The notes beneath the pieces are model-generated. The model was given only the letters and a program-made list of their open reading frames with translations. It had not been told where the DNA came from and did no database searches. Both the position numbers and the translations under genes were made by a program. A stretch of DNA of 64,000 nucleotides, taken from NCBI GenBank assembly GCA_002269645.1, contig NIVC01000296.1, forward strand, positions 434,001 through 498,000, given 5' to 3'. The stretch is from Macrostomum lignano. Taxonomy: Eukaryota. Numbering within the stretch: the stretch's first letter is position 1; each line of letters opens with the position of its first letter. Shown here one piece after another: positions 5,243 to 60,969 of this stretch.

Positions 5243-6288
5243 ACCAATACCCGTTGGAGCCGCCCTGCGTGTCGGTCCGCTCCGCCCCAGCTACGGAAGC
5301 CGAACTGGCCGCACTGGCCAACTCGCTGCGCGGCCGAGCCATGCTGCAACAGCTGGCCGCTGCCGCCTTCCCTGCGGGGACTGCTGCTCTGTCAGCTGTG
5401 AATGAAGCCGCGGAAGTCTCCAACAGCAAGCAGGCGGCCGCCCCGCCGTCCCGCCAGCGTCGCTACGAGTCCGCCCGCACCAAGCGACGCCGGCGAGCCG
5501 CCGCGGCCGCCGCAGCCGACGAGTCCAAGCAGGCGGCCAGTTTTAAGGCCAAACTGAAGCCAATGAAAACCGCCGACGATGTCTTGAAGCGAATCCAATG
5601 GGACGAGGGCATTCCGGCCCAGGACATCTTCATCGGCTATCTGGACAGGTTCAAAGGCGTAGTTGAAAAACAATTCGACGAATTCAGCTGGGAGGACATC
5701 GCCAGCGTCGACTATTACACGTTCGTGATCCCCCGGCACCGGATTTGCTACTTCAAGTACAGGCGCGCGGTCATCTGGGACAAGCGGCGCCGGCTTGACC
5801 TGGTGTTCGGCTCCACGGCCACTGCCGACGATGTCGCTGAAGGCGCCGACATCTACAAGCTCATCGCCAACTACCGGGACGAGGACTATCCGGACGGCGA
5901 GGCGTCCATGGCCTCGGCCGCGTCGTCCTCAAACTCGGAGGCTGACGAATCCGACGAATCTGATGAATCTGACGACGACGGCGTCCAGGTGCGGCTCGAC
6001 CGGCGCATCGTCGAGTCCGCAGCTCAGCGGTGCGGCGATGACGGCGACAGTCTGAGCGAAGGCGAGGACCAGGCCCAACTGTCCGGCACCGCCAAGGTCT
6101 ACTGGCGCGACCTGCTGCGCCCAAATTTCTTTGTCTGCGTCCGGGTTGTCGATCCGGCCGTCGCCTCCGCCGCTGCCGCCGTGCAGGCCAGCATCGTCCG
6201 GCAGCAGCCCGCCTTCGCCTCCTGCTGCATCCCGCCGGAGATGCTGCACTGCACCCTGGCCACCCTGCGGCTGGACTCCGCAGAGCAG
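5243..6288 (+). CDS. LENG9: LENG9-like protein, exon 2 (end of RWD, MJ1316/DUF504 domain, acidic linker, start of AKAP7-like 2H phosphoesterase)
   Basis: Acceptor ggcag| at 5242. MKTADDVLKRIQWD...IGYLDRFKG...IPRHRICYFKY...WDKRRRLDLVFGS is an MJ1316 signature. LRPNFFVCVRV and the first HxT motif (LHCTL) follow. Donor cag|gtgagg at 6289. Confidence 0.9.
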
Positions 6289-6296
6289 GTGAGGAT

Positions 6297-7880
<1,584 letters not shown>

Positions 7881-18687: not shown

Positions 18688-19164
18688 ATGCCACTCTCCT
18701 GTCGCTACTATGAACGCAAGTTCCCCGAACTAGAAGAGGTGGTCATGGTGAACGTGCGCAGCATCCAGGAGATGGGAGCCTATGTGCACCTATTGGAGTA
18801 CAACAACATTGAGGGCATGATCCTGCTGTCCGAGCTGTCTCGTCGGCGGATTCGCTCCATTAATAAGCTCATTCGAGTCGGTCGCAACGAAGTCGTGCTG
18901 GTGATCCGAGTAGACAAGAACAAAGGCTACATCGATCTATCCAAGCGGCGCGTGTCCCAGGAGGAAGTGGAAAAATGCGAAGAGAAGTTCGCCAAAGCCA
19001 AGGCTGTCAATCAAATTTTGAAACGCGTCGGAGAAAAGTTGGGCTACGAGAAGGACGAACAGCTGGAGGAGCTGTACAACAAAACTGCCTGGCATTTCGA
19101 TCGCAAGTACAACAGGCCCGGGGCCAGCTTTGAAACATTCAAGCACTCCGTCACTAATCCTGAG
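18688..19164 (+). CDS. EIF2S1: Eukaryotic translation initiation factor 2 subunit alpha, exon 1
   Basis: [23 protein letters not shown]...[22 protein letters not shown] (S1 domain, Ser51-equivalent intact). Donor gag|gtgggc at 19165. Confidence 0.97.
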
Positions 19165-19214
19165 GTGGGCGCTGCGCTTGGCTGTTTTTTGTTTCAAATT
19201 CTCCTTTTCTTCAG

Positions 19215-19785
19215 CTGCCCTGTCACAATCCCTCAGTTACAGCTGCTGCCCTGTCCCTAATCCCTCAGTTACAGCTGCTACCCTGTCCCTAATCCCTCAG
19301 TTACGGCTGCTACCCTGTCCCTAATCCCTCAGTTACAGTTGCTACCTGCCCCAAATCCCTCAGTTACGGCTGCCACCCTGTCCCTAATCCCTCAGTTACA
19401 GTTGCTACCTGCCCCAAAGCCCTCAGTTACGGCTGCCACCCTGTCCCTAATCCCTCAGTTACAGTTGCTACCCTGTCCCTAATCCCTCAGTTACAGTTGC
19501 TACCCTGTCCTTAATCCCTCAGTTACAGCTGCTACCCTGTCCCTAATCCCTCAGTTACAGCTGCTACCCTGTCCCTAATCCCTCAGTTACAGCTGCTACC
19601 CTGTCCCTAATCCCTCAGTTACAGCTGCTACCCTGTCCCTAATCCCTCAGTTACAGCTGCTACCCTGTCCCTAATCCCTCAGTTACAGCTGCTACCCTGT
19701 CCCTAATCCCTCAGTTACAGCTGCTACCCTGTCCCTAATCCCTCAGTTACAGCTGCTACCCTGTCCCTAATCCCTCAGTTACCTG
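19215..19785. repeat. 32-bp intronic minisatellite (CCCTGTCCCTAATCCCTCAGTTACAGCTGCTA)n
   Basis: Period 32, inside the eIF2-alpha intron. Confidence 0.95.
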
Positions 19786-34745: not shown

Positions 34746-35077
34746 TCATTAAGATAAGTCGAACTTGAGATATATTGAGATTAATATATGCGTCATATTG
34801 GGTAGACAATGGATGCAAAAACGCTGCCATTGACTAAATCTTTTACTATAAGTAGTGAAACTTGGCAGCGAGTGGATAATTTTGCTGTCTTGCATCTAGT
34901 TGCCTTGATTAGCATAATCAAAGATCTGTGTTTTCTGCAACTAACATCTGCTGCTAAATTGTCGGATTCACGTGACATTCGAAAAAAGAAATAAATCAAG
35001 TCTTTGCTAATCAGCGGTCAAGCAGACACGAAAGCGACAGTCCCCGCCTATTTCGTGTAAAACAATCACCATTTCAG

Positions 35078-35181
35078 TTCAGAGCCTGCCGCCCTTGAAA
35101 AATCGCGATTTTGTGACGCAGCGGTCTTGGATGGCCACGCCGCTGGAATGCATCATTCTGAATCATTCCGTCTTTCACAGG
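35078..35181 (+). CDS. STARD10: STARD10-like, exon 3
   Basis: tttcag| phase 1, (I)[34 protein letters not shown]. Donor agg|gtgaga at 35182. Confidence 0.9.
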
Positions 35182-35221
35182 GTGAGAATTGTCATTGGTA
35201 TTTGTCTCCTTACAGGATACT

Positions 35222-35678
35222 CCCTCCCCATGCTGTGTCTGCTCTGTCCCTTCTCCATGGTGCTGTGTCTGCTCTGTCCCCTCCCCATGCTGCTGTGTCT
35301 GCTCTGTCCCCTCCCCATGCTGCTGTGTCTGCTCTGTCCCCTCCCCATGCTGCTGTGTCTGCTCTGTCCCCTCCCCATGCTGCTGTGTCTGCTCTGTCCC
35401 CTCCCCATGCTGCTGTGTCTGCTCTGTCCCCTCCCCATGCTGCTGTGTCTGCTCTGTCCCCTCCCCATGCTGCTGTGTCTGCTCTGTCCCCTCCCCATGC
35501 TGCTGTGTCTGCTCTGTGCCCTCCCCATGCTGTGTCTGCTCTGTCCCCTCCCCATGCAGCTGTGTCTGCTCTGTCCCTTCTCCATGCTGCTGTGTCTGCT
35601 CTGTCCCCTCCCCATGCTGCTGTGTCTGCTCTGTCCCCTCCCCATGCTGCTGTGTCTGCTCTGTCCCCTCCCCATGCT
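35222..35678. repeat. 30-bp minisatellite (CCCCATGCTGCTGTGTCTGCTCTGTCCCCT)n, left arm
   Basis: Period 30 with 27-bp variants. The same array resumes at 40438 on the other side of the retrotransposon. Confidence 0.95.
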
Positions 35679-35723
35679 TCTTCTTCTTCTTCTGTTTCCC
35701 GGCACGCCGTTGACGCTTCGGCG

Positions 35724-35905
35724 TCAATATTGGCGGGGGCTCAGGCGCCCCACAGCACGTACGAACGCGATGATCCGGCCTGTCGGCGCCGATAGGGGGT
35801 CCTCGACGCCGAAGTAGCGGGCTCTGGCGGCGTCACCTCTTGGGCAGCGGCGGAGGAGGTGGTCGGCCGTGTCCACCGCGCCGCAGTCACTCCACTTTTT
35901 TGTCC
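35724..35905 (-). pseudogene. Frameshifted C-terminus of the retrotransposon ORF (CCHC-type zinc knuckle)
   Basis: Alternative frame reads KKWSDCGAVDTADHLLRRCP...[11 protein letters not shown]. Removing one A from the A6 run at ~35896-35901 fuses it to the main ORF. The expected first Cys position is Trp. Confidence 0.7.
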
Positions 35906-38900
35906 TCTTGGAGACCAAGACGTTGGCGGGTGGCGGCGCAGATGGTGGAGACGCCCGCTCTGAGTTGATTAACCAACACCTGCTCGCGTCGATTGCGGGT
36001 GGTGTCGGTGGGTGACGGCTGGTTGGTAGGCTCTGCGTCGCGGCGTCGGCGATCGCGGCGGATAGCGGCCCTCGCGGAGTCTAACGTGATGGCAGCTTCG
36101 CTCTGCGGAAGGGTAGCTGCCGTAGCCGCCGCTCTGTCAGCCGCTTCGTTGCCGGCAATCTGGCAGTGGCCAGGTACCCATCCGAAGTAGACCTTGGAGT
36201 AGGTGGCTCTCGCGATGGTGTCCCAGCAGGCGTGCCCGGCAGCATTTCGCTGGCCGGCCGGGCCGCGGGCCAGTGCCGACAGGGCGCTGAGGCTGTCAGT
36301 GAGGATGGCTATACTGTTGGCGGCGGCGTGTAGCTCCAACGAGGCACGAAGGGCGGTTGCGATAGCAGTCATTTCTGCTTGGTAGCTGCTGCAGTATGTC
36401 CCGGCCGGTGCTAGGTGCTCAGTGGTGGTACCATTATAGTGGATCACGGCCGCTCCCCCTCCGTGGGTGCAGCCTTCGTTGGCGGAGCCGTCCGTCCAGG
36501 CCGTGATCTCGAGCTCTTGGGCCGCTCTGAGGACCGCGTCGGCCGCTCTGGCGCGTTCTTCTGCCGGGGCTTTGCGGTTGACCATACTCGCCGTTGTGTC
36601 GAAGATAACTTCCGCGCTGGTGTCGCTTTCCCAGGGGGCGGCGATGATGATCTGCTCGCGCGCCATTTCATCGAGCGTTGCTACAACAGGGAGTTCTCGT
36701 GCGGCCCTCCTCCAGCATCCGCGGTGTGGCCGTTCGCGGTCTCGGGCTCCTATTCCGCTTCCCGGTTCGTCTTGCGGGTCATAGCTTCGATTTTTTAGGC
36801 GGGGTCTCGTCGAGCGGGCGGCGGTATCCACTGCCGGGCAGTCCGGCGGGAGACGAAGAATGCGCTCGCGAAGCATTGCCGCGCGTTCTATGGCGATCGA
36901 GCCGATCGGGGGGAGCCTGGCGATGTTGAGCGTGGTCTCGTTGCGGGTAGTACTGCAGCAGCCTGTGATCATCCGCGCGCATATCGACTGCTGTTGTTCG
37001 ATCATGCGTCGCGTGCTAGGCGCTGCTCCGGTTAGCCATATACCGCTTCCGTAGTCTGCACACGCTCTGATAGTGGTGATATAGGCCAAGCGGAGGATGT
37101 TTTGGTCCGCTCCACTGTTGCGGTGGGCAATGGCCGTGATTGCGCCTCTGCGCCGGGCCATGCGGGCCTTTACCTCGGCTCCATGCTTGTTGAAGGTTAG
37201 CTGATCGTCAAGGGTCAGGCCTAGGAGTCGAGGGTGCGGATCGTATTTAAGTTCGGCTCCGTTAATGTGCAGGTTGAGTCGGACTTTGCCGTTGTTCTCT
37301 TGTGGCGAGAGAGTGAAGGTCGAGTAGATGCATTTCTCGGTGCTGAGGGTGACCTTCCACCGCTTACACCATTCGGCGGCCGCATCAATGGCTGGTTGCA
37401 GGATGTCGGCGCAGTCCGTTAGCTTCCTGCTGGTGGCTAGCAGTGAGCTGTCGTCGGCGTATAGGTTAATTTTACAATCAGGGCTAGCCCTTTTTATGGT
37501 CGTCGGCAGGTCGTTGACGTACGTAGTCCACAGGGTGGGGGCGATGACGCTTCCTTGTGGAAGGCCCTCCTCGAGGACTCTTTCCCTGCTGATAGTTTGT
37601 TGCCATTTCACCCTGGCGCGGCGGTCTCTGAGGAATTTGTGCACCCAGAGGATGAATCTAGCAGGTACCGTGAGCTCGTATAGCTTAACAGTCAGAGCAG
37701 CGCGCCATACTCTGTCATAGGCCTTGCTGAAGTCGAGTAGGCATATGGCAGAGCGTTTCGCTGGTTGTTCCTCAAAACCATCAAAAATCGATTGGCAGGT
37801 GTGGGCGAGGACCTCTTCGGTGCTCCTGCCCTGGCGAAAGCCCGCCTGCTCTGGGGCCAGTTTGTGTTCACGTTCGAGGTAAGCGTTAAGTCTTTGCTGT
37901 ACGAGTTTCTCTCCGACCTTGCAGATGGAGCTCGTAAGGGCAATAGGTCGGTACGAGGACGGTGAGCTTGGCGATTTGTCCTTTTTAAGAATCGGTATGA
38001 TAGTGGCTCTTCGCCATTCGGTGGGGACTTGGTCACCCTTCCAGACTCTGTTCAGAAGGTTGAGGATCTGAAGCTCCATGGCCAGGGGGAGCTGTTTCAA
38101 CATCTCATTGCTGACCTGGTCAGGGCCAGGGCATTTACCGGATTTAAGTCTGCGGATTATGTGACGGAATTCGCCGATAGTAAAGTCTGATTCCGGGCCG
38201 TGGTTGGTGGCGGTAGCTCTGCAGTTGCGGAGGATGCGGTTAGCCTCTTTCACTATAGCCTCGTCGTTGTCTCCCTTATCTAGCCGGGATTCTTTAGCGT
38301 AAATTTGCATGAAGAGGTCGGCCTTATTCTTTTTAGTGATAGCCACTTTAGTCCTACCAGAAGTTGGGTTGGTATAACTAATGGTGGAGCTGGATGCTTG
38401 TGGTTTGGCTTCGCCTCTCATGTTGCGGAGGGTCCTGTAGAGATTGGTGTCTAGCTTCATGTCTTTACACGTTTCCGACCAGAATTCTTTTTTGGCGTTG
38501 TGAATGGTATTGCGAAGGCACGTGCGCGCTTGCGTGAGTTCCTGCATGTTTGTGTCGGATGCATCTGTTTCGACATTTTTGCGGGCTTGCTGATTTCTGT
38601 GTAGCGCTGTGTCGCATTCGTCATTCCAGAAAGGTCTCGAAATGTTCTGCGCGCCGTTCCGGGCTCCCTTCGGGATAGCTGCTGCGGCGGCTTGCAGTAT
38701 GGCTTTGCAGATACGTTTGTGTTCTGCTTCGGGGGATTCCGCCGCGTCCTGGACATGATTTTGAAGGGTCTCTTTAAATATATGCCAATTCGCCTTCTTG
38801 TACGACCACTGCGCTTGTCGTTGTTGTCGATGAGGGCGACGCGCTTGCACGCAGAAGGTGATAGGCAGATGATCGGAGCCCAGATCTTTAGCGGTGGACC

Positions 38901-40431
38901 AGGTTCTGCAAACAACTGCGCTCGGACGGCCTCGGGCCAAGGTGCAGTCCGGTGCCGAATTGCCTCCCGTCGCTGGGTTGAGTCTTGTCGCAGAGTTCCT
39001 GGTGTTGCAGATGTTGAGGTTGTTATTACTCGCCCAGGTTTCCAGTTCGGCGCCCCTGTTGTCTCCGGGCTGGAAAGGGTCCCAGTAACCGTGACAATTG
39101 AAATCTCCGCCTATGACGGTGTTGCCCGTTATCGGTATACAAGAGAGATCCGGAGTCCAGGCTTCATGTTGGCGTTGGCTACTGTGAGGGGCAGCGTACA
39201 CACTGGCGATGTTGAGGTCGCCTTGACCTTTGAGGTGGAGAGTGCACGCAGCAATATCAAGTGCGGCTTTGGATTGGTCGGGCAGGGTGGTGAAGTTGAT
39301 ATCGTTTCTGACCATGATGAGGGCGCCTCCCCGACCGGCTCTCTTGGAGCGGCGTTGCGGTGGGGTCGACGGGTTGGCTGGTCTGACCGTTACTGGATCT
39401 TTAGGTGTAGACTTGGGCAATGTTGACGGTGTGCTGGATCGGCTCGCATCTTGTGGTGTCGAGCAGCAGCTTCCGATGTATTCGTCGTTCCAGTCTTTAC
39501 TGCGCTTGAGGCCGCTACATTTCAGGTGTAGCCAGTTCCAGCACTGGTTGCAGCGGAGGCTAGTCTGGCGTTTGGTAATGATATTGTTGCAGGCTGCGCA
39601 CAGCCATGTGGAGGCGGTGTCGAGACCGGGTTGCAAGTTTATGTTTTTCGGCTTTTCAGTGGTGTTTTTGCCGAGGGGTCCCGACGTCGCTCCGGTTGTA
39701 TCGTTTGGTTGCGTCGTGGCCGTGTGGCGGTCAGGTCCGGATTGCGCGTTGTTATTTTTTTGGGTTTTATTGTGGTTGTCCGCGCCGATTTGGGCCTTCG
39801 CGTCTGGCCATGGCTCATTGCGCCGGGTGCAAGCCGATCGGGATGATCTGCAGCCTTTACACCAGTCAGTTCTGTCATCAGGCCAGCGTAGACGGCACCG
39901 TGGCCTTCGCGGGAAAGTGCGGGCGGTGCACGTGGCGCCGGGCTGGAATGGCCGGGTGGCGGTGGCAGTTTCTGTTGCGCTCTCGGTGGCGTCTGAGCCT
40001 GGGAAAATGTCAATTTTGTTGCTGCCGTCGGCACGGGCTGCTACACTATAGCCGCTCGGGGCGGTGTAGCTCGTGTCCGGCGTTAGTTTTGTCTCTTGCA
40101 GAAGGACTGCCGCAGGGCGATGCGTATCCAGCCACCTGGTTAGTTCCGGAGTCCTGGCTCTAATGCCGTTACAGTTGAACTGTAGGATAAGGAGCTCTTC
40201 CAGTGCTTTAGCATGGCGCCTGTTGCGACGGTTGCCGTGTCTGCTTCCTTTAGACGGGGGGTCGCTGCCGCCCCGTAGGCGGAGGACGTGATCGAGGTTC
40301 CCGCTTTCCCGCTGATCGGGTGGGCCGTTGTCGTAATCGTTGCTCTTCGTACGTGCTGTCCGGGGAAGGAGGGACACTTCGCCACATGGGGGATCCATGT
40401 GCTCGGGGGCGCTACGAGAAAGCGGTCCCAT
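35887..40431 (-). CDS. Retrotransposon polyprotein (~1514 aa from the first element-internal ATG): leader ending in LRLRGG, APE endonuclease with PHD insertion, reverse transcriptase, RNase H
   Basis: Endonuclease: LQFNCNG, LLQETK, GGDFNCH, GSDHLPI. RT: CPGPDQV, YRPIALTS, QAGFRQGRST, LDFSKAYD, GLPQGSVIAP, YADD (37450-37461). RNase H: WTDGS, ILTDS, WVPGHCQIAGNEAAD. The extra 540 N-terminal aa in the supplied ORF lie in the minisatellite. Confidence 0.9.
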   Translation of the reverse strand: MGPLSRSAPEHMDPPCGEVSLLPRTARTKSNDYDNGPPDQRESGNLDHVLRLRGGSDPPSKGSRHGNRRNRRHAKALEELLILQFNCNGIRARTPELTRWLDTHRPAAVLLQETKLTPDTSYTAPSGYSVAARADGSNKIDIFPGSDATESATETATATRPFQPGATCTARTFPRRPRCRLRWPDDRTDWCKGCRSSRSACTRRNEPWPDAKAQIGADNHNKTQKNNNAQSGPDRHTATTQPNDTTGATSGPLGKNTTEKPKNINLQPGLDTASTWLCAACNNIITKRQTSLRCNQCWNWLHLKCSGLKRSKDWNDEYIGSCCSTPQDASRSSTPSTLPKSTPKDPVTVRPANPSTPPQRRSKRAGRGGALIMVRNDINFTTLPDQSKAALDIAACTLHLKGQGDLNIASVYAAPHSSQRQHEAWTPDLSCIPITGNTVIGGDFNCHGYWDPFQPGDNRGAELETWASNNNLNICNTRNSATRLNPATGGNSAPDCTLARGRPSAVVCRTWSTAKDLGSDHLPITFCVQARRPHRQQRQAQWSYKKANWHIFKETLQNHVQDAAESPEAEHKRICKAILQAAAAAIPKGARNGAQNISRPFWNDECDTALHRNQQARKNVETDASDTNMQELTQARTCLRNTIHNAKKEFWSETCKDMKLDTNLYRTLRNMRGEAKPQASSSTISYTNPTSGRTKVAITKKNKADLFMQIYAKESRLDKGDNDEAIVKEANRILRNCRATATNHGPESDFTIGEFRHIIRRLKSGKCPGPDQVSNEMLKQLPLAMELQILNLLNRVWKGDQVPTEWRRATIIPILKKDKSPSSPSSYRPIALTSSICKVGEKLVQQRLNAYLEREHKLAPEQAGFRQGRSTEEVLAHTCQSIFDGFEEQPAKRSAICLLDFSKAYDRVWRAALTVKLYELTVPARFILWVHKFLRDRRARVKWQQTISRERVLEEGLPQGSVIAPTLWTTYVNDLPTTIKRASPDCKINLYADDSSLLATSRKLTDCADILQPAIDAAAEWCKRWKVTLSTEKCIYSTFTLSPQENNGKVRLNLHINGAELKYDPHPRLLGLTLDDQLTFNKHGAEVKARMARRRGAITAIAHRNSGADQNILRLAYITTIRACADYGSGIWLTGAAPSTRRMIEQQQSICARMITGCCSTTRNETTLNIARLPPIGSIAIERAAMLRERILRLPPDCPAVDTAARSTRPRLKNRSYDPQDEPGSGIGARDRERPHRGCWRRAARELPVVATLDEMAREQIIIAAPWESDTSAEVIFDTTASMVNRKAPAEERARAADAVLRAAQELEITAWTDGSANEGCTHGGGAAVIHYNGTTTEHLAPAGTYCSSYQAEMTAIATALRASLELHAAANSIAILTDSLSALSALARGPAGQRNAAGHACWDTIARATYSKVYFGWVPGHCQIAGNEAADRAAATAATLPQSEAAITLDSARAAIRRDRRRRDAEPTNQPSPTDTTRNRREQVLVNQLRAGVSTICAATRQRLGLQEDKKVE

Positions 40432-40439
40432 TGCCCACC
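40371..40439 (-). ncRNA. HDV-like self-cleaving ribozyme (predicted) at the retrotransposon 5' end
   Basis: Minus strand: P1 GG(U)GGGC/GCCCCC; J1/2 AAU; P2 GGGACC/G(U)GUCCC; P3 GCU/AGC; L3 UUCUCGU; P1.1 UC:GA; P4 CACAUGG/CCAUGUG; J4/2 GCGAA (catalytic C at 40381). Confidence 0.7.
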
Positions 40440-42045
40440 CCTCCCCATGCTGCTGTGTCTGCTGCTGCTCTGTCCCCTCCCCATGCAGCTGTGTCTGCTC
40501 TGTCCCCTCCCCATGCTGCTGTGTCTGCTCTGTCCCCTCCCCATGCTGCTGTGTCTGCTGCTGCTCTGTCCCCTCCCCATGCTGCTGTGTCTGCTCTGTG
40601 CCCTCCCCATGCTGCTGTCTGCTCTGTGCCCTCCCCATGCTGCTGTGTCTGCTCTGTCCCCTCCCCATGCTGCTGTGTCTGCTCTGTCCCCTCCCCATGC
40701 AGCTGTGTCTGCTCTGTCCCCTCCCCATGCTGCTGTGTCTGCTCTGTGCCCTCCCCATGCTGCTGTCTGCTATGTGCCCTCCCCATGCTGCTGTGTCTGC
40801 TCTGTCCCCTCCCCATGCTGCTGTGTCTGCTCTGTCCCCTCCCCATGCAGCTGTGTCTGCTCTGTCCCCTCCCCATGCTGCTGTGTCTGCTCTGTGCCCT
40901 CCCCATGCTGTGTCTGCTCTGTCCCCTCCCCATGCTGCTGTGTCTGCTCTGTGCCCTCCCCATGCTGCTGTCTGCTCTGTGCCCTCCCCATGCTGCTGTG
41001 TCTGCTGTGTCCCCTCCCCATGCAGCTGTGTCTGCTCTGTCCCCTCCCCATGCAGCTGTGTCTGCTCTGTCCCCTCCCCATGCTGCTGTGTCTGCTCTGT
41101 CCCCTCCCCATGCAGCTGTGTCTCCTCTGTCCCCTCCCCATGCTGCTGTGTCTGCTCTGTGCCCTCCCCATGCTGTGTCTGCTCTGTCCCCTCCCCATGC
41201 TGCTGTGTCTGCTCTGTGCCCTCCCCATGCTGTGTCTGCTCTGTCCCCTCCCCATGCTGCTGTGTCTGCTCTGTGCCCTCCCCATGCTGTGTCTGCTCTG
41301 TCCCCTCCCCATGCTGTGTCTGCTCTGTCCCCTCCCCATGCTGCTGTGTCTGCTCTGTGCCCTCCCCATGCTGTGTCTGCTCTGTCCCCTCCTCATGCTG
41401 CTGTGTCTGCTCTGTGCCCTCCCCATGCTGTGTCTGCTCTGTCCCCTCCCCATGCTGTGTCTGCTCTGTCCCCTCCCCATGCTGCTGTGTCTGCTCTGTG
41501 CCCTCCCCATGCTGTGTCTGCTCTGTCCCCTCCTCATGCTGCTGTGTCTGCTCTGTGCCCTCCCCATGCTGCTGTCTGCTCTGTGCCCTCCCCATGCAGC
41601 TGTGTCTGCTCTGTCCCTTCTCCATGCTGCTGTGTCTGCTCTGTCCCCTCCCCATGCTGCTGTGTCTGCTCTGTCCCCTCCCCATGCAGCTGTGTCTGCT
41701 CTGTCCCCTCCCCATGCTGTGTCTGCTCTGTCCCCTCCCCATGCTGCTGTGTCTGCTCTGTGCCCTCCCCATGCTGTGTCTGCTCTGTCCCCTCCCCATG
41801 CTGTGTCTGCTCTGTCCCTTCTCCATGCTGCTGTGTCTGCTCTGTCCCCTCCCCATGCTGCTGTGTCTGCTCTGTCCCCTCCCCATGCAGCTGTGTCTGC
41901 TCTGTGCCCTCCCCATGCTGCTGTGTCTGCTCTGTCCCCTCCCCATGCAGCTGTGTCTGCTCTGTGCCCTCCCCATGCTGCTGTGTCTGCTCTGTGCCCT
42001 CCCCATGCTGCTGTGTCTGCTCTGTCCCTTCTCCATGCTGCTGTA
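40438..42045. repeat. 30-bp minisatellite, right arm (same unit as 35222-35678)
   Basis: Directly visible; no stop codons in most frames, which produces several artefactual long ORFs. Confidence 0.95.
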
Positions 42046-44558: not shown

Positions 44559-45172
<614 letters not shown>

Positions 45173-45897
45173 GATGGATACTTGTAGATAGATAGATGGA
45201 AGCCTGAGGGTCCTGAAGAAAGCCGTATTTAAGACAGCAAATTTGCGTGACACTTTTGAGAACAGGAAATATCACAGCCATGGGCTTCCTTGCAGAAGAA
45301 ATTTAGCTTCCATTATCTCAGATAAAAAACAACTGCTTTCTACCCCACAGCGCCCAAGGATTAAGAGGCGATATTTGAATTTAGACACACTTAGCAGACA
45401 CAAGCGAATATTAATTGAAAGCCTTTGCAAATCTATTGACTATTTATTTAGATAGGCGACAAGAAAAAGATGATTCATTACGGAGGAAAAACTGCAGGAT
45501 GAGAAATGCTATTAAGGACAAAATTCAAGCCAAGGAGAGCTAGTCATTAGCCACCTGGAATTGGCAACTCCGCCCAAATCAGCAGAATGAGTTGATTACT
45601 TTTAATCCAGATCCTATATCCAATTGATCTCCTGATCTTGATAATGATAGCAAATCACTAGGGGGTGGCAAAAGCGTCGGGCATTATGAGACCTGCGGGC
45701 ATCATCTTTGACAGGTAGGGGTGGCTGATGGACTCCTGGAGTCAACACTAGCTAATAATCAAACCTATGTGCAGATTTAGTTGTTAAAAATGAAGAAATG
45801 CCTGCGACTGAACGGACAGGGAACTGTTCCTGGGGTAAGAGTTTTGGGGAGCAGATAGGATCAATGCTTGAGCAGAGTCAATTCTCATGCATATTAG

Positions 45898-45966
<69 letters not shown>

Positions 45967-45970
45967 CATC

Positions 45971-46068
<98 letters not shown>

Positions 46069-46099
46069 CATCATCTATCTATCTATCTATCTATCCATC

Positions 46100-46145
<46 letters not shown>

Positions 46146-46150
46146 TTATC

Positions 46151-46197
<47 letters not shown>

Positions 46198-46280
46198 ATC
46201 TATCTATCATCTATCTATCTATCTATCATCTATCTATCATCTATTTATCTATCTATCTATCTATCATCTATCTATCTATC

Positions 46281-46327
<47 letters not shown>

Positions 46328-46331
46328 CATC

Positions 46332-46362
<31 letters not shown>

Positions 46363-46373
46363 ATCTATCTATC

Positions 46374-46436
<63 letters not shown>

Positions 46437-46467
46437 CATCATCTATCTATCTATCTATCTATCCATC

Positions 46468-46498
<31 letters not shown>

Positions 46499-46532
46499 CA
46501 TAATCTATCTATCTATCCATCATCTATCTATC

Positions 46533-46583
<51 letters not shown>

Positions 46584-46587
46584 CATC

Positions 46588-46622
<35 letters not shown>

Positions 46623-46637
46623 ATCTATCTATCTATC

Positions 46638-46692
<55 letters not shown>

Positions 46693-46845
46693 CATCATCT
46701 ATCTATCTATCTATCTATCCATCATCTATCTATCTATCTATCCATCTATCCATCTATCTATCTATCTATTTATCTATCATCTATCTATCTATCTATCTAT
46801 CATCTATCTATCTATCTATCTCTATCTATCATCTATCTATCTATC

Positions 46846-46880
<35 letters not shown>

Positions 46881-46926
46881 ATCTATCTATCTATCTATCT
46901 ATCTATCATCTATCTATCTATCTATC

Positions 46927-46961
<35 letters not shown>

Positions 46962-46976
46962 ATCTATCTATCTATC

Positions 46977-47007
<31 letters not shown>

Positions 47008-47095
47008 ATCTATCTATCTATCTATCTATCATCTATCTATCTATCTATCTATCTATCATCTATCTATCTATCTATCTATTTATCTATCTATCCAT
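45898..47095. repeat. (TATC)n microsatellite (inverted relative to 44560-45172)
   Basis: Directly visible. Confidence 0.97.
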
Positions 47096-52705: not shown

Positions 52706-53664
52706 TTCCTGCAGCAGATATCGAACAGGCACATATTACAGCGTATTATGCTGGCTGTTTGCCTCTGTGATAAAAACGTATTACTTATTGCAAGAACATT
52801 TAAAGTTCGCCATCACAGTCATTGGTGAATGGCAGACTCTACCTTTTTCATTTCTGAGCCTTGCCAACTGGAATCTGTTGTGATCGCAATTTACCGTTTA
52901 TTACCCGCGGTTTTGGAAACAAAGAAGCCGTCTTTTTGTCTTGTTTATTCGCGTCACAAAACTTGTGTTTAAGCGTCGCCCGACTATTGTACTTTTTCGC
53001 GGCCCGCTAGCACTTCCAATTAGTCATTGTTGTTGTTTGTTGATTTTCATTACATGCCTCTGCAGCTTTATTAATATTCGATAACCTGTGACAGCTGTAC
53101 CAAATATTGTTGTTTTAACGAACACAATTTTTAATTGCCATTCCATATTATGCTGAACTTGTATTAGAACCTGATTACTGTTAAATCAAGTGTTTTTTCT
53201 AGGCAAGTTGGTTCTTTTGGCTTGCACTTCTGCTTTTTTGATCTGCTGGATTTGCATGCTTTTATGATAATTTATTTTTAATCGATGTTGTTATTCCCTT
53301 GGCACTTTAATCTCTGTTGGTTGTAGCGGAGCGATTGCGCATTACCGAACTTTTGCTTTACTGATTATTGGTAAATATACACACGTGTTGGATATTATTA
53401 GGGACACTTTGACTTAAGGTCTGACTTGCCCGTCTTATACCGACAGTTTTGTGGCGTGTCTTGCGCAGAAATGCATTCTGATCGACTTTTGCCTGCGTCA
53501 TTTTGCAGCAGCTGCAATGTCCGTTTTATTGGCACACTTTAGGCTCTAGACACGGTTTAAAAGCCGCCTTTCAACTCTGGACACCCTTGAGAACGTGTGG
53601 GGACACTTTGTGAATCCTCTTTGGACATTTTAGGAACTGCCCAGGACACACTGAAATTCTATCT

Positions 53665-56210
53665 GGACATCCCTTTAGCCCGGTCTGGACACCCCTTAAA
53701 TCCTGGTCTGGGCACCCCAGTAATCCCGGTCTGGACACCCCTAAAATCCCGGTCTGGACACCCCTTTAATCCCGGTCTGGACACCCCTTTAATCCCGGTC
53801 TGGACACCCCTTAAATCCTGGTCTGGGCACCCCAGTAATCCCGGTCTGGACACCCCTAAAATCCCGGTCTGGACACCCCTTTAATTCCGGTCTGGACACC
53901 CCTTTAATCCCGGTCTGGACACCCCTTTAATCCCGGTCTGGACACCCCAGTAATCCCGGTCTGGACACCCCTAAAATCCCGGTCTGGACACCCCTTTAAT
54001 CCCGGTCTGGACACCCCTTTAATCCCGGTCTGGACACCCCTTTAATTCCGGTCTGGACACCCCTTTAATTCCGGTCTGGACACCCCTTTAATCCCGGTCT
54101 GGACACCCCTGTAATCCCGGTCTGGACACCCCTTTAACCCCTTTAATCCCGGTCTGGACACCCCTGTAATCCCGGTCTGGACACCCCTTTAATCCCGGTC
54201 TGGACACCCCTAAAATCCTGGTCTGGACACCCCTTAAATCCCGGTCAGGGCACCCTTTAAAGCCCGGTCTGGACACCCCTTTAATCCCGGTCTGGACACC
54301 CCTGTAATCCCGGTCTGGACACCCCTTTAATCCCGGTCTGAACACCCCTAAAATCCTGGTCTGAACACCCCTAAAAACCTGATCTGAACACCCCAAAAAT
54401 CCCGGTCTGGACACCCCTTAAATCCTGGTCTGAACACCCCTAAAATCCTGGTCTGAACACCCCTAAAATCCTGGTCTGAACACCCCTAAAATCCTGGTCT
54501 GAACACCCCTAAAATCCTGGTCTGAACACCCCTAAAATCCTGGTCTGAACACCCCTTAAATCCCGGTCAGGGCACCCTTTAAATCCCGGTCAGGGCACCC
54601 TTTAAATCCCGGTCAGGGCACCCCTTAAATCCCGGTCAGGGCACCCTTTAAATCCCGGTCAGGGCACCCCTTAAATCCCGGTCAGGGCACCCTTTAAATC
54701 CCGGTCAGGGCACCCTTTAAATCCCGGTCAGGGCACCCTTTAAATCCCGGTCAGGGCACCCTTTAAATCCCGGTCAGGGCACCCTTTAAATCCCGGTCTG
54801 GACACCCTTTAAATCCCGGTCAGGGCACCCTTTAAATCCCGGTCAGGGCACCCTTTAAATCCCGGTCTGGACACCCTTTAAATCCCGGTCAGGGCACCCT
54901 TTAAATCCCGGTCAGGGCACCCTTTAAATCCCGGTCAGGGCACCCTTTAAATCCCGGTCTGGACACCCTTTAAATCCCGGTCAGGGCACCCTTTAAATCC
55001 CGGTCAGGGCACCCTTTAAATCCCGGTCTGGACACCCTTTAAATCCCGGTCTGGACACCCTTTAAATCCCGGTCAGGGCACCCTTTAAATCCCGGTCTGG
55101 ACACCCCTTAAATCCCGGTCAGGGCACCCTTTAAATCCTGGTCAGGGCACCCCTTTAAATCCCGGTCAGGGCACCCTTTAAATCCCGGTCTGGACACCCC
55201 TTAAATCCCGGTCAGGGCACCCTTTAAATCCCGGTCAGGGCACCCCTTAAATCCCGGTCAGGGCACCCTTTAAATCCCGGTCAGGGCACCCTTTAAATCC
55301 CGGTCAGGGCACCCTTTAAATCCCGGTCAGGGCACCCTTTAAATCCCGGTCAGGGCACCCTTTAAATCCCGGTCTGGACACCCTTTAAATCCCGGTCAGG
55401 GCACCCTTTAAATCCCGGTCAGGGCACCCTTTAAATCCCGGTCTGGACACCCTTTAAATCCCGGTCTGGACACCCTTTAAATCCCGGTCAGGGCACCCTT
55501 TAAATCCCGGTCTGGGCACCCTTAAATCCCGGTCAGGACACCCCTTAAATCCCGGTCAGGGCACCCTTTAAATCCCGGTCAGGGCACCCTTTAAATCCCG
55601 GTCAGGGCACCCTTTAAATCCCGGTCAGGGCACCCTTTAAATCCCGGTCAGGGCACCCTTTAAATCCCGGTCTGGACACCCTTTAAATCCCGGTCAGGGC
55701 ACCCTTTAAATCCCGGTCAGGGCACCCTTTAAATCCCGGTCTGGACACCCTTTAAATCCCGGTCTGGACACCCTTTAAATCCCGGTCAGGGCACCCTTTA
55801 AATCCCGGTCTGGACACCCCTTAAATCCCGGTCAGGGCACCCTTTAAATCCCGGTCAGGGCACCCCTTAAATCCCGGTCAGGGCACCCTTTAAATCCCGG
55901 TCAGGGCACCCTTTAAATCCCGGTCAGGGCACCCCTTAAATCCCGGTCAGGGCACCCTTTAAATCCCGGTCTGGACAACCTTTAAATCCCGGTCAGGGCA
56001 CCCTTTAAATCCCGGTCTGGACACCCCTTAAATCCCGGTCAGGGCACCCTTTAAATCCCGGTCTGGGCACCCTTTAAATCCCGGTCTGGACACCCCTTAA
56101 ATCCCGGTCAGGGCACCCTTTAAATCCCGGTCTGGACACCCTTTAAATCCCGGTCTGGACACCCTTTAAATCCCGGTCTGGACACCCTTTAAATCCCGGT
56201 CTGGACAACC
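53665..56210. repeat. ~2.5-kb satellite, 23-24-bp unit (AAATCCCGGTCAGGGCACCCTTT / AAATCCCGGTCTGGACACCCTTT)
   Basis: Period 23 measured at 54788-54811; two interspersed variant types. Confidence 0.96.
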
Positions 56211-56964
56211 ATTAACGCTAGCTTATTCTGCTGGCAATTTGCATGAGCATTCTAACGCAGCGAAGGCGAACGGAAACAAGACCCAAAGTGCGTGTAGCTA
56301 CACTGGCTTTCTTAATACCCGATCTCCCAGGCATGTTTGCACGCCATGGCCTGTGTTTTTTGTATAAGGCATTCCTTAACTGTAAACGAATTAGAAGCTG
56401 CATAATATTGCCACTTTCTATTCTATATTTCTTATCCAGTTTAATAGGGACCCAATGCAGTCAAATGCGACTGGTCACTGGACCCCGTGTGAAAATTCAT
56501 TGAACTCCAGGTCTTTCACAGTGTTTCACTTCAGTTCGCGTCTTGCTTGTTCCGTGAGGGGGGGGGGTGAGGGGCCCTCTTTCTTCACCGCAAGTCAACC
56601 CCCCTCCCCAAGAGTCCCGGCCGCTCATTCGCTGATTCACCCCCTCCCCCATCTGCTTGAATCCCGATCTCCGAATTCGGCAATGTACAGTCATGGAGGC
56701 CCAGGAACAGATTCTGGAGTCGCAACAGTTCCTTCTCTGATCTGAAACTTGAAAAGAAACTTAGTTGTCTGAAAAAAGAGCTGTCACTCCAAGGCTCTGG
56801 TTCATGCGTACAGGGCAGCCCACCTCCTCTCTCTCCCCAGTCGTCCCCTCCTCTTGCTAGCTCAATAAAAGGCATCGGTGCTTTGAATTTGCTGTGAATC
56901 CTATCTCGAACGAAGAAAGTGATCTTGTGCTGGCTTAGAAGACCGCCGTGATCGCCACTAAATC

Positions 56965-59900
56965 ATGAGCTTAACCTTGGCGTTCCTGGGCTGCCTCATC
57001 CTGCTATCCAGCCTCACCTTGGACGCCACGGCCAACCTGGACTCGACTCCAGCCGTCTGCCAGGGCACGCATCAGTCTGAGTTCACCAGAAGCAGCTCCG
57101 TGCAGATCTTGAACTCCATCCGCAGCCAGTTGGACGGCTGCCAGATTGTGATAGGCGATTTGCACATCATGAACATCCGGGAGAAAGACTTCCAAAAAAG
57201 CAGCGCCAACTTTAGCCTGGCGTTTCTCGACTCCATCCAGGAGGTCACCGGCTGCGTCTGGATTGTCAACAGCTGCTTCAGAGTTCCCATCATCTTCCGC
57301 GGGCTTCGGGTCATCCGCGGCGCCAACTGCGACAGCGCTGTCACTATCCAGTACCTCAGCGAGTGCCGCATGCAGCCCGACGCTGTCTTCAGCCGCCTGG
57401 TATTCATCGCAAACGGCGGCGTCACGGCGGTTGGACTGCGGTCCTGTCACCTGGTTCGCGACATCAACTACACCGAGCTATTTCAGAACCCCGACAGGCA
57501 GCGCCTGATTGTCCAGCCGAAGTGCTCCGGCCCCAGCGGCTGCCACTCGGACTGTCCGGTGTGGCGGGACGGCCATCGCCACTGCTGGGGCCCCGGGCCA
57601 GACCACTGCCAGGAGCGCAGTCGCTGTTCCACACTGACCGCCAAGCAGTGCCCCGGAGGCCGCTGCTACCTGGACGGCCAGGACTCGATGACAATGCCCG
57701 AGCGCTGCTGTGCCGAGCAGTGCCTCGGCGGCTGTCACGGAACCGCCGCCAGCCACTGCATCGCCTGCGCTAGCTTCAACAAGTCGGGCGTCTGCGTCGG
57801 CGCCTGCAACCCAAGCGCCGTGTACGACTCGAGCAGCGCATCCTTCATTAAGTCGACGGAGTCCAGCAGCCTCATCCCGCTTGGCCCAGTTTGCGTCGCC
57901 AGGTGCCCGAAGACGTATTTCACTCAGGAGGGCGCCTGCGTCAGCCGCTGCTCCGAGGGCTTCGCGCCAACCAGCGACGGCGTCTGCGAGACGAACGAGG
58001 CCGGCCGGGCCTGCGAGCAGCGGAAAGGTTCGGCCATTGTATGCGACTTGGCCAACCCGCTGCTGGCCGGCGGCCGCAACTCCAGCCTGCTCTGCTCGCA
58101 CTACACTGGCGAACTGGCAATCTTTGACGACTGCATCGCGACTGACGTCCAGAAATCATACCAACCCAGGCCCGGGCTCCGGCCGCTGGCCCTGGACGAG
58201 CTGTACTTCTACCTCAGCCGCCTAGCCGTCATCCGGGGCAGCATCACCGTCGTGCTGAACAACCGGACGAACATGTCGTTCCTAAGCGGCCTCCGCCGGA
58301 TTGACAAACGGCCGGGCCACCCCAATGACGGCTACATGCTCGTGCGCTCGTCCAGCCTGCGCTTCCTCGGGCTGGCCTCGCTGAAGCACCTGGCCAGCTT
58401 TTTACTGGCCCAGCCGAAGCCTCCTCTCTGTCCAAGCCTCCTGCCAACCAGGCGCGCTTTCGACGACCGACTAGTAACGCTGCTGAATCCTAATGAGACT
58501 AGCGCCCAGTTTGACGCTGTCCGGAAGAGCAGCCTGACCGCCGACTGTCAGAGCTGTCACCCGGAGTGCGACCCCGCCTACGGCTGCTGGGGTCCCGGGC
58601 CTGACCTGTGCATCCGCTGCCGGCGTCACCGACTGCCAATCGACGAGTCCGGCGGCCGCGGAATCTGCGTGTCCGACTGCGACGGCATCGACGGCTGGTA
58701 CAACGCTGGCAAAGTTGAGGCGGTCGGCCTGCAGGTGAACGAGAGCCTCTGCAGCCGCTGTCACCCGCTGTGCAGCAGCTGCACTGGCAACAGCCAGCAG
58801 GACTGCACCAAATGCGCCCCGGAGGCCTTTGCCGAGGCCGACACCGGCGCCTGCGTGCCGGCTTGCTCGAACATCCGTCAGTTCGCCGACGCGGATCGCG
58901 TCTGCCGACCCTGCCCAGACGCCTGCACTCCGGCTATCGGCTTCGGCCAGGAGCCCACCTGCTCCGGCAACCTGTCTGCGGTCGGGCCGGGCGGCTGCAG
59001 CTACTGCTCCAAGGTGATGGAGCCTGACGAGCGCGATGGGGAGTCCGACAGCGAGCAGGCAGTCATTCGGTGCCTGAACCCGCTGGTGGCGTGTCCTGAG
59101 GGCTACCAGCTGCGTGTGCTGGAGTTTGACGAGGCCCAGCGACATTTTGCCTGGCGTCGCCGGCGACCGCACAGCTTCGTGTCAATCTGCAAGCGCTCGG
59201 ACGCCGAGGCTGAGCTCAAGAAACGCCGATCGGTCCGGGAAGCCCGACTGGCAGTGGCCTACGTTGGCGCGGGCGTCGTCGTTGTCATCACTCTGATCCT
59301 GGGCGGCATCACCTGCCGCTGTCTGCGCCAGCGAGCCGCCGCCGCGGCGGACACGGAGAAACGACGCCAACTTGGCGAGAACGGCCATCGGCGAGTGATG
59401 ATGATGGATGGCAGCTGGGATGAAGACGCCGAGCTTTTGAATGCCAACGACGGCATCGAGGGCGTCAACAGAGGGGACGACGCCGCGGGCGGCATCGAGC
59501 TTGAAGGCATCGCCGTTCTGCGCACCATCTCAGAGAACGAGCTGACCAGGGGCGCCGAAATCGGCTCGGGCGCCTTTGGCACCGTGTACCGCGGCGAGTG
59601 GCTTGCCGAAGCTTCGGTTGGCAACGGTCCGGTTCGTCAGCACGTTTCAGTGGCCATTAAAATCCTGGCAGACTCGAGCGACTGCGGCGGCAGCTGCCTG
59701 TCCAGCGAGCTACTCGCCGAGAGCCGCATAATGGCCTCCGTGCGGCACCGGCACTGCCTCAGCCTGGTCGGAGTGTGCATGACTCAGCCGCCGCAGCTCA
59801 TCAGCCGCTTCCTGCCGCTTGGCAACCTCCGCGACTTCCTGCGGGCCCGCCGCGGCACCGGGCAGCTCGGGAGCAGCCACCTGCTGCGCTTCGCGGCCCA

Positions 59901-60447
59901 GATCGCCAGCGGCATGGCCTACCTGGAGCAGCGCAGCGTCATCCACCGGGACCTCGCCTGCAGAAACGTGCTGGTCGCCTCGCCCAGGTGCGTGAAGATC
60001 ACTGATTTCGGCCTGGCCCGCCTCATGGATAATCCCAACGAAGAGTACCAGGCCTCCGGTGGCAAGCTGCCTGTGAAGTGGCTGGCCCTCGAGTGCCTCG
60101 TCTGCCGGCGGTTCTCTCACAAATCCGACGTCTGGGCCTACGGGGTGACGCTCTGGGAGATCTTTATGTTCGGCGAGCCGCCCTACGCCAACGTGAGGCC
60201 GGTTGACCTCGCCGACTACCTGGAGAAAGGCGAACGTCTGCCGCAGCCGCCTATCTGCACCCTCGACGTGTACATCCTCATGATCAAATGCTGGATGCTG
60301 AACGAGTCCCAGCGGCCCAGCTTCGACCAGCTCGAGTCCAGCTTCCGCAAGATGTGCGACTCTCCGGGGCGCTACGTCTACATCAAAGGCGACAGGTTCG
60401 CGGCTGGTCGAAGGCCTCATCGCGACGACGGCAACTGCGGAGGAGGC

Positions 60448-60478
<31 letters not shown>

Positions 60479-60969
60479 ATGGCTGCAACGGGAGTTCCGG
60501 GTCCTCACCGACTGGCAGCGGCAGCAGCAGCTCGCAGGAGGCGCACCACGCGCCCGATGGCAGCGCCGGAGACGGTCTCGACGATGGCGAATATTCGCCT
60601 CTGGAGGTCAACGAGGAGGTGAACGTTGACGAGGTGTTCAGAGTGTCGCCTCCGCCGCTGGCTTCCGCCGAAACCGGCAGCACTGAGGTCGACGCCGACG
60701 CCGCCGCCTACGGCAACGCAGCGGCTATGGCGAATCTTGGACCGATGAAGCACGGCGCAGTCCCTGAGAAGCTCGTGAACAACAAGTACTGCAGCGACCC
60801 GAGCTCCGACCAAGAGCTGCAAGACGACTACCTGAGGCCCAACTGCTCGACACAGGCCAGCCTGGCTACCGCGGTGTACAATCCCGAGTACTTCTTCAAC
60901 GCGTCTCGTGCCGCGACGCCGAAGCCGCCGCCGCCTCAACAGGTGGGACAGACTGTGGATTCCCAATGA
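56965..60969 (+). CDS. EGFR: EGFR/ErbB-family receptor tyrosine kinase (1334 aa, intronless)
   Basis: Signal peptide, receptor-L domain (CQGT...GCQIVIGDLHI), furin-like Cys-rich repeats (CWGPGPDHC, CHPEC..GCWGPGPDLC) and a TM helix. Kinase motifs IGSGAFGTVYRG, VAIK, HRDLACRN, DFGLARL and GGKLPVKWLALE. Tail tyrosines (NNKY, DDYL, NPEY). Confidence 0.95.

Follow-up and report, generated by a model that had tools for sequence, protein, structure and literature searches.

A single-ORF LINE of Macrostomum lignano with a ubiquitin-tail-like leader, a candidate 5' ribozyme and two zinc modules within its endonuclease

The DNA analyzed here, hereafter the window, is a stretch of 64,000 nucleotides from Macrostomum lignano (assembly GCA_002269645.1, contig NIVC01000296.1, positions 434,001 to 498,000), in which positions are counted from the first letter. 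On its minus strand, positions 35679-40437 are occupied by a 4.76-kb (4759 bp) retrotransposon without long terminal repeats (non-LTR), i.e., a long interspersed nuclear element (LINE), of the apurinic/apyrimidinic endonuclease (APE) type, which interrupts a 30-bp minisatellite. Its single long open reading frame (ORF) encodes, in order, a leader ending in VLRLRGG, the N-terminal part of an endonuclease, a Cys4 cluster, a plant homeodomain (PHD)-like finger, the C-terminal part of the endonuclease, a reverse transcriptase (RT) and an RNase H. The end of the leader resembles the C-terminus of ubiquitin, the two zinc modules lie within the endonuclease, and the 5' end of the element RNA forms a candidate ribozyme of the hepatitis delta virus (HDV) type. 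The features of the element and its flanks are listed below by window position; pLDDT denotes the predicted local distance difference test score, and L003 and P0001 are two relatives described further on.

35665-35678, no strand: target-site duplication, copy adjoining the 3' end of the element, CCCCTCCCCATGCT on the plus strand
35677-35692, minus strand: (GAA)n 3' tail, (GAA)5, in sense ...ACAGAAGAAGAAGAAGAAG
35693-35723, minus strand: short 3' untranslated region, adjoining the tail
35724-35900, minus strand: C-terminal tail in a shifted frame (translation), KKWSDCGAVDTADHLLRRCP... ending in QY and a stop codon at 35724-35726
35887-40431, minus strand: main ORF, 1514 amino acids (aa) plus stop (ATG at 40431, TGA at 35887), with no ORF1
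36115-36507, minus strand: RNase H, aa 1309-1439, Pfam PF00075, E 2.1e-11, with motifs TDGS, AEMTAI, TDS and NEAADRAA
37321-37989, minus strand: RT, aa 815-1037, Pfam PF00078 RVT_1, E 2e-34, with YADD at 37444-37464
38842-39348, minus strand: C-terminal part of the endonuclease, aa ~362-530 (GRGGALIMV ... GDFN ... SDH), Pfam PF14529, pLDDT >90
39463-39606, minus strand: PHD-like finger, aa 276-323, within the endonuclease insertion
39829-39897, minus strand: Cys4 cluster CRLRWPDDRTDWCKGCRSSRSAC, aa 179-201, within the endonuclease insertion
40024-40200, minus strand: N-terminal part of the endonuclease, aa 78-136 (QFNCNG ... LLQETKL ... GYSVAARADG), Pfam PF03372, pLDDT >90
40207-40245, minus strand: basic stretch SRHGNRRNRRHAK just after the GG of the leader, found in the same place in P0001 and L003
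40267-40314, minus strand: ubiquitin-tail-like segment QRESGNLDHVLRLRGG, aa 40-55, with VLRLRGG at aa 49-55
40371-40439, minus strand: HDV-like ribozyme candidate of 68 nt, a nested double pseudoknot at the 5' end of the element (descriptor and Rfam)
40438-40451, no strand: target-site duplication, copy adjoining the 5' end of the element, a 14-mer identical to 35665-35678

Both junctions and the coordinates of the original prediction were borne out, in that identical 14-bp copies flank exactly 35679-40437 and the element carries a (GAA)5 tail. In the sense orientation the 3' junction reads ...GGGAAACAGAAGAAGAAGAAGAAG, then CATGGGGAGGGG..., and the 5' junction ...CATGGGGAGGGG, then TGGGCAATGGGACC.... 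The outer AG of the duplication could equally be assigned to the tail, and its final one or two Gs to the first base(s) of the element RNA. The phase of the satellite is set back by 12-14 nt across the insertion, and a target-site duplication of 12-14 bp is the simplest reading of the flanking 14-mers; against it stands the fact that the target is a tandem repeat, so that a variant of the unit length could mimic a duplication. The GC content of the element is 58%, versus 47.5% for the window, and self-BLAST detected no second copy of the element, no terminal repeats and no long internal repeats within the 64 kb. The assignment to the LINEs is based on an endonuclease/exonuclease/phosphatase (EEP) domain upstream of the RT in one ORF, together with the target-site duplication, the simple-repeat tail and the lack of terminal repeats. 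A retrotransposon with long terminal repeats or a DNA transposon was rejected on the same lack of terminal repeats, and a domesticated host gene is disfavored by the target-site duplication, the tail and the satellite context.

The minisatellite itself extends over 35231-35678 and 40438-42044 and is free of stop codons in all six frames. As a result, ORF prediction yields spurious frames of up to 2054 aa and artefactually extends the element ORF 1.6 kb upstream. Just upstream of the tail, a 7-bp hairpin (UUGACGC-CGAA-GCGUCAA, 35710-35727; ViennaRNA) shares positions with the stop codon that closes the repaired frame described below. In both elements with an intact 3' junction, namely the studied one and its relative L006 (also (GAA)n-tailed, ending GAGGAGAAGAAGAAGAAG), the tail is followed by CA(T/G)G: GAAG is joined to CATGG at window position 35677/35676 and to CAGG at ~4506 of L006. 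With n=2, this may hint at a preferred nick site.

The main ORF starts only 6 nt from the first unambiguous base of the element. The endonuclease motifs QFN, QET, GDFN and SDH, the YADD of the RT and the acidic residues of the RNase H are all present, and Pfam detected no protease domain in the element. The module order that had been predicted holds from the leader with its LRLRGG through both endonuclease parts, the Cys cluster, the PHD-like finger, the RT and the RNase H, but it fails for the zinc knuckle at the end. This CCHC-type knuckle (35844-35894) is read in another frame, beyond the stop of the main ORF, and has Trp in place of the first Cys. The homologous region of P0001 (...DVCPDCGARDTEQHILFDCPRG) stands in frame, which traces the shift in the studied copy to one additional base within or close to the A6 run at 35896-35901. 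The C-terminal knuckle is thus lost here through a 1-nt frameshift, as judged from the sequence, and with both the frame and the first Cys gone the copy is near-intact rather than a perfect single ORF. Taken together, the element is probably a recently inserted, nearly intact, single-ORF APE-type LINE bearing an RNase H. Its organization resembles that of Ingi, the likeness being one of layout.

The distribution of the individual modules was analyzed among related proteins. A HMMER scan of 1.84 billion representative sequences with aa 1-545 as the query yielded 1538 matches, and the modules were mapped in 181 retrieved relatives. The commonest order among these was a 2A peptide (NPGP), followed by the PHD and the two endonuclease parts, and in ~60 relatives the PHD was located upstream of an uninterrupted endonuclease. 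A Cys cluster within the endonuclease was detected in P0001, P0016, P0018, P0019, P0020, P0028, P0163, P0167 and P0173, while RLRGG occurred only in P0001 and P0018/P0183. The Cys cluster marks a subclade, and among these relatives RLRGG is confined to a small lineage. The trypanosomatid element P0005 was among the few full-length matches, which is not decisive for the clade. A word-indexed protein search with the N-terminal 215 aa gave no matches, the same type of search with alignment A2 recovered only 2A-type relatives, and a scan of JGI metagenomes with A2 gave no confirmed locus.

The closest relatives that could be traced are those of M. lignano, and the window has no repeats in common with the M. 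lignano loci. One of these relatives, P0018 (PAA56246.1, locus L003), is encoded by the same M. lignano assembly and shows 38-47% aa identity to the studied protein. In one frame, L003 reads ...NLHRVLRLRGG / QFNCNG...LLQETKL...GYHVAAREDG / CRLRWPQDKTGWCNGCRSGRSAC / WHCSDCSKVIRRNSYSVQCTSCSGWLHLKCSGL...GPCC / GRGGVLILV... / RT, i.e., the leader with its RLRGG, the N-terminal endonuclease part, the Cys cluster, the PHD, the C-terminal endonuclease part and the RT. The architecture accordingly extends beyond a single copy, as had been predicted, and the shared module order identifies it as a trait of the lineage. MRLRGG and the Cys cluster are also present in P0001. The sister elements P0016/L008 and P0170/L005 are arranged in the order 2A, PHD, N-terminal endonuclease part, Cys cluster, C-terminal endonuclease part, with a 2A also present in P0164; from this order we infer that in the studied lineage the PHD was moved and the 2A was replaced.

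The homeologous empty site L004 sets the 5' junction of L003 after the host sequence CTAATG, with the element starting TGGGACCG..., and comparison with L004 also shows that the 3' part of the L003 copy is deleted. The copy is old and partly deleted, and may have lost its first ~9 nt. This M. lignano relative lies in frame inside a coding exon of a Q-rich C2H2 zinc-finger gene (L002 1917-4855; L003 from ~8837 on), and it is included in the annotations of host proteins PAA56246.1 and PAA91395.1; the homeologous copy PAA93933.1 corresponds to the empty site (L004 ~8876).

In the leader, the segment QRESGNLDHVLRLRGG is identical to ubiquitin residues 62-76 (QKES-TLHLVLRLRGG) at 11 of 16 positions and ends exactly at G76 (BLASTP); the likeness to ubiquitin is limited to its last ~15 residues. 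The pattern xNLxxV(L/M)RLRGG is the sole block of the leader conserved in the studied element, L003 and P0001, the remainder being unalignable. Over its nine conserved codons (N, L, VLRLRGG), comparison of the window with L002/L003 revealed five synonymous differences and none that were non-synonymous, which argues for selection on the peptide rather than on an RNA element. The studied ORF contains no NPGP and hence no 2A peptide (D(V/I)ExNPGP); RLRGG stands in the 2A slot. The basic stretch that follows the GG is a possible nuclear localization signal.

In ubiquitin-ribosomal protein precursors, and in cytopathic pestivirus polyproteins with ubiquitin inserts, processing is performed by host ubiquitin hydrolases. 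The situation envisaged here is similar, in that a host enzyme would be expected to cut right after ...LRLRGG and to release the downstream protein, to the benefit of a selfish element; in those systems, however, an entire ubiquitin domain is present, in contrast to the last ~15 residues in the studied element. Two points weigh against cleavage. Pfam gave no match to the ubiquitin domain (beta-grasp, ~76 aa) at E<=10 in the leaders of the studied element, L003 or P0001, which renders efficient cleavage uncertain, and deubiquitinases need the ubiquitin body for efficient catalysis, bare RLRGG being cut very inefficiently. Since bare RLRGG is such a poor substrate, we place the proposal that a host deubiquitinase cleaves the leader after the GG, functionally replacing 2A, somewhat below even.

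The same two points favor a different role for the motif, in which RLRGG would be conserved for something other than release: docking, uncut, to host proteins that bind or process ubiquitin, service as part of a nuclear-import or regulatory segment, or recognition by another LxGG-specific protease. The basic stretch directly behind the motif in the studied element, L003 and P0001 would also fit such a role. Nevertheless, the motif reproduces the scissile end of ubiquitin exactly (...LRLRGG), it fills the slot of the self-processing 2A of the sister lineages, and it does so in an element that carries no protease domain of its own. We regard a role other than release as rather doubtful, and cleavage by a host deubiquitinase as the better, though still uncertain, explanation of the leader.

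The 5' end of the element RNA was analyzed separately as a candidate ribozyme, the parts of which are as follows.

P1: GUGGGC / GCCCCC with one U.C, or GG-U-GGGC with a bulged U
J1/2: AAU
P2: GGGAC / GUCCC
P3: GCU / AGC
L3: UUCUCGU
P1.1: G paired with a C of L3
P4: CACAUGG / CCAUGUG
J4/2: GCGAAGU, with the candidate catalytic C at 40381

The start codon (40431-40429) overlaps the junction of J1/2 and P2, and with the AUG thus lying inside the fold, codons 1-20 are at the same time ribozyme sequence. The fold was found by hand and then cast as a generic HDV descriptor, which gave a single match in the 4.76-kb sense strand (40438 to 40371), within 1-2 nt of the junction. Dinucleotide-shuffled versions of the element gave a background of 2.1e-5 descriptor matches per nt, and 15 of 2000 shuffled copies of its first 150 nt contained a match, while the real minus strand of the window contained 36 sites (5.6e-4 per nt); at these rates, the chance of a match within 3 nt of the junction is about 0.4% at worst. 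In a cmscan of 40355-40455, the HDV_ribozyme family RF00094, a model named and described after hepatitis delta virus alone, ranked at the top of 4227 Rfam families (22.1 bits, with E 0.12 against the entire library and about 3e-5 when this family is taken singly), and the global alignment (40441 to 40370) recovered the same P1, P3 and P4.

Comparable folds were observed in two sister elements. In L008 (the contig of P0016), a 62-nt fold at 129-190, in which every helix is perfect and L3 is UUCACGU, overlaps the called start of an ORF that has no AUG before its 2A; RF00094 was the only Rfam match there (16 bits, E 1.7). In L005 (the contig of P0170), a fold at 3196-3274 lies at the transition from AT-rich flank to GC-rich element, ~110 nt upstream of the ATG; this element has neither a (GAA)n tail nor a target-site duplication, owing to truncation of its 3' end. 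A G at +1, an L3 that opens with UUC and a G following P1 are common to the three elements. Their P1, P2 and P3 have different sequences but pair at 14/14 to 16/16 positions, apart from the one U.C of the studied copy. This comparison includes three sequences only, all found with the same descriptor, and its pairs were counted by hand, with no covariance model, as the MAFFT alignment failed past P3. In L008, positions 1-128, directly upstream of the fold, contain the apparent reverse-complemented, (GAA)n-tailed 3' end of a related element, with a (TCC)n run before it, which suggests two elements abutting head to head.

On the strength of the descriptor match, the top rank in Rfam and the comparable folds in L008 and L005, the HDV-like fold proposed at the 5' end stands, and it is likely, from sequence comparison, to be a functional or recently functional ribozyme. 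Its competitor, namely that the fold is a chance match or a decayed relic and that the 5' end is set by an internal promoter as in many LINEs, appears distinctly unlikely, although several observations speak for it. The Rfam score of 22.1 bits is far below the gathering score of 50, and an Rfam search of 35000-41000 at E<=10 returned no HDV family. In the studied copy, one U of P1 is bulged or mismatched, and the helix opens with G-C in place of the G.U wobble. The descriptor was written after the sequence had been seen, and it matches the 36 sites of the window minus strand mentioned above. Minimum-free-energy folding of the first 200 nt was unremarkable (z 0.77), a result that is uninformative for a pseudoknot. 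The fold in L005 has no Rfam support and sits in a locus with a high descriptor background, and neither the descriptor nor Rfam revealed a convincing fold in L002/L003 (the closest relative with DNA), L006 or L007. Conversely, the match is the only one in the sense strand of the element and lies 1-2 nt from the junction, HDV_ribozyme tops Rfam both here and in L008, and the three related elements combine the same L3 and J motifs with different helix sequences. The lack of a fold in L003 would be explained if this old, partly deleted copy has lost its first ~9 nt.

The third distinctive feature of the element is the interruption of its endonuclease. The N-terminal part matches Exo_endo_phos at aa 83-128 (E 2e-08, the better of two matched stretches) and the C-terminal part matches Exo_endo_phos_2 at aa 407-524 (E 8e-14), both in Pfam. 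In an alignment of 22 related endonucleases (A3), an insertion of ~230 aa, composed of the Cys cluster, a linker and the PHD-like finger, was located between GYxVAxRxD and GGG(V/L)xxxV in the studied element and L003. The same interval measures 0-10 residues in most relatives and 70-130 in a subclade with an invariant CRxRx6-7WCxGCx5-6C cluster; in the cluster itself, C179, W190, C191, G193, C194 and C201 are invariant in five relatives. AlphaFold2, run on A3, modelled both halves as one EEP domain with pLDDT >90, which agrees with the predicted arrangement, and the best PDB matches in Foldseek were the endonucleases of TRAS1, human L1 and R1Bm. In this model the EEP fold of the endonuclease is complete, and an excursion of ~230 aa emerges from its beta3-beta4 loop. 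We take the insertion point to correspond to the SDKEG-YSG loop of human APE1, a loop in contact with the minor groove of DNA, and not to the beta-hairpin to which target specificity in LINEs is usually ascribed.

The location of a PHD inside the endonuclease, which had been proposed from the sequence, is supported by relationships to solved fingers and to the family, Pfam by itself remaining below threshold. Three points weigh against it: the Pfam match (aa 278-313, E 0.064) is below threshold, the last ligand pair of the pattern (CxxC-x14-CxxC-x4-H-xxC-x16-CC) is CC instead of CxxC, a trait common to the family, and the insertion was modelled by AlphaFold2 at low to moderate confidence. On the other side, the best relatives in PDB are all PHD fingers, beginning with BPTF (E 3.8e-4), followed by TAF3, PHF13, Pygopus and MLL, and the Trp before the His of the finger aligns with the cage Trp of BPTF. 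In addition, the finger is homologous to the N-terminal PHD of dozens of 2A-PHD-APE relatives, aligning with those of P0022, P0102, P0128 and others. The idea that the PHD and the Cys cluster are peculiar to the studied copy, as a nested insertion or an assembly artefact that left the endonuclease dead, draws on the predicted protein P0001, which shows no PHD between the Cys cluster and the C-terminal endonuclease part but whose gene model lacks most of the RT and may be mis-spliced, and it is rejected as very improbable, since L003 has the same order in one open frame at 38-47% identity, the frame of the studied copy is intact through 1514 aa, no EEP catalytic motif is missing and both halves are modelled as a single fold.

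The modules can be assembled into a putative life cycle. The element RNA would be made within a longer transcript and would free itself through the 68-nt HDV-like ribozyme at its 5' end, and translation would begin at the AUG 8-9 nt from that end, inside the fold. A host deubiquitinase might then cut the resulting 55-aa leader after the GG of ...VLRLRGG, which would free the enzyme from the leader or, in unprocessed read-through transcripts, from any host peptide fused upstream, and the released protein would begin with the basic stretch that resembles a nuclear localization signal. The Cys4 cluster and the PHD might bind DNA or chromatin beside the active site and thereby bias the location of the nick, after which target-primed reverse transcription from the (GAA)n tail, RNase H action and second-strand steps would produce the duplication of 12-14 bp by the standard LINE mechanism. 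The combined proposal, in which a 2A was swapped for a minimal ubiquitin C-terminus cut by a host deubiquitinase, while the PHD and the Cys4 cluster in the endonuclease loop steer integration, is a tentative one, and on present evidence we consider it unlikely to hold in all its parts.

Individually, the ribozyme, the PHD and an N-terminal processing signal are known modules. The L1Tc/ingi elements carry HDV-like ribozymes in the first ~70-77 nt of their RNA (PMC3185411, PMC4035085) and N-terminal 2A peptides (PMC3708506). The metazoan single-ORF LINEs Crack, CR1, Rex1, L2 and Ingi-1_AC have an N-terminal 2A, often followed by a PHD (Odon et al. 2013, PMC3708506), and R2 has an HDV-like ribozyme at its 5' end (PMC3774820). 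With the L1Tc/ingi elements, the studied element shares a single ORF with the order APE, RT and RNase H and no ORF1 and, as candidates, a 5' HDV-like ribozyme and a short leader that ends in a processing signal upstream of the endonuclease. In contrast, it carries VLRLRGG instead of a 2A, its endonuclease is interrupted by the Cys4 cluster and the PHD, it has a (GAA)n tail and a CCHC-type knuckle, and its host is an animal. The tail of L1Tc/ingi is poly(A), and the knuckle of L1Tc is of the C2H2 type. The metazoan 2A-PHD LINEs have the same type of PHD and, in the same slot, a leader with a processing signal; there, however, the PHD lies upstream of an uninterrupted endonuclease, whereas the studied element and L003 have it within the endonuclease, following the Cys cluster. 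Similarly, the candidate ribozyme resembles the HDV-like ribozymes of R2, RTE, Baggins and L1Tc, as well as the genomic HDV and CPEB3 ribozymes, in the nesting of P1-P2-P3-P1.1-P4, the compact size (62-79 nt), the C followed by purines in J4/2 and the position at the exact 5' end of the element. It differs from them in the G-C pair that opens P1, the U bulge in P1, scores that stay under the Rfam gathering threshold, and the start codon inside the fold, which encodes the first 20 residues of the protein.

A search of the full-text literature, a scope that leaves Repbase outside, found no link between a retrotransposon and LRLRGG, no ubiquitin-tail LINE and no LINE with an APE domain split by zinc fingers, which is consistent with the view taken in the original prediction that no described family has the full combination. 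As far as can be told, three features are new: a ubiquitin-tail motif that takes the place of 2A, a Cys4 cluster inside the endonuclease, and a PHD relocated into the same loop. Regardless of function, the move of the PHD into the endonuclease is an undescribed domain rearrangement, and the candidate ribozyme would extend 5' HDV-like ribozymes to another animal LINE group. If the proposal were correct, this would be the first retrotransposon shown to rely on the ubiquitin-processing machinery for its maturation, and a bare ubiquitin tail of ~15 residues would suffice as a cleavage signal in vivo, i.e., as a natural minimal deubiquitinase substrate. LINEs would then possess two independent solutions for the removal of a leader dictated by the ribozyme or the host, the viral-type 2A and hijacked ubiquitin hydrolases, and an endonuclease would tolerate a reader module of 230 residues in a loop beside its active site. 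In practical terms, such features would be of interest for compact cleavage tags and for the retargeting of LINE-based gene-insertion tools.

Among the other contents of the window, an uninterrupted ORF of 1334 aa on the plus strand (56965-60969) encodes Receptor L, furin-like Cys-rich and growth-factor-receptor IV domains and a tyrosine kinase (E 9e-83), and appears to represent an intronless kinase of the EGFR/insulin-receptor type in a very GC-rich block (up to 66%). Two further plus-strand ORFs are probably host genes as judged by Pfam, one with an MJ1316 RNA cyclic-end recognition domain and an AKAP7 2',5'-RNA-ligase-like domain (5254-6450) and the other with an S1 RNA-binding domain (18688-19260). 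At 11210-13361 (plus strand) lie fragments of another, degenerate non-LTR retrotransposon; in short segments, these pieces of endonuclease and RT share ~35-44% identity with the studied element. The window is also unusually rich in mini- and microsatellites (44 rows in Tandem Repeats Finder, TRF), including many tetranucleotide repeats and several satellite arrays of 1-2.5 kb, e.g., at 6298-7878, 44559-47092 and 53662-56215.

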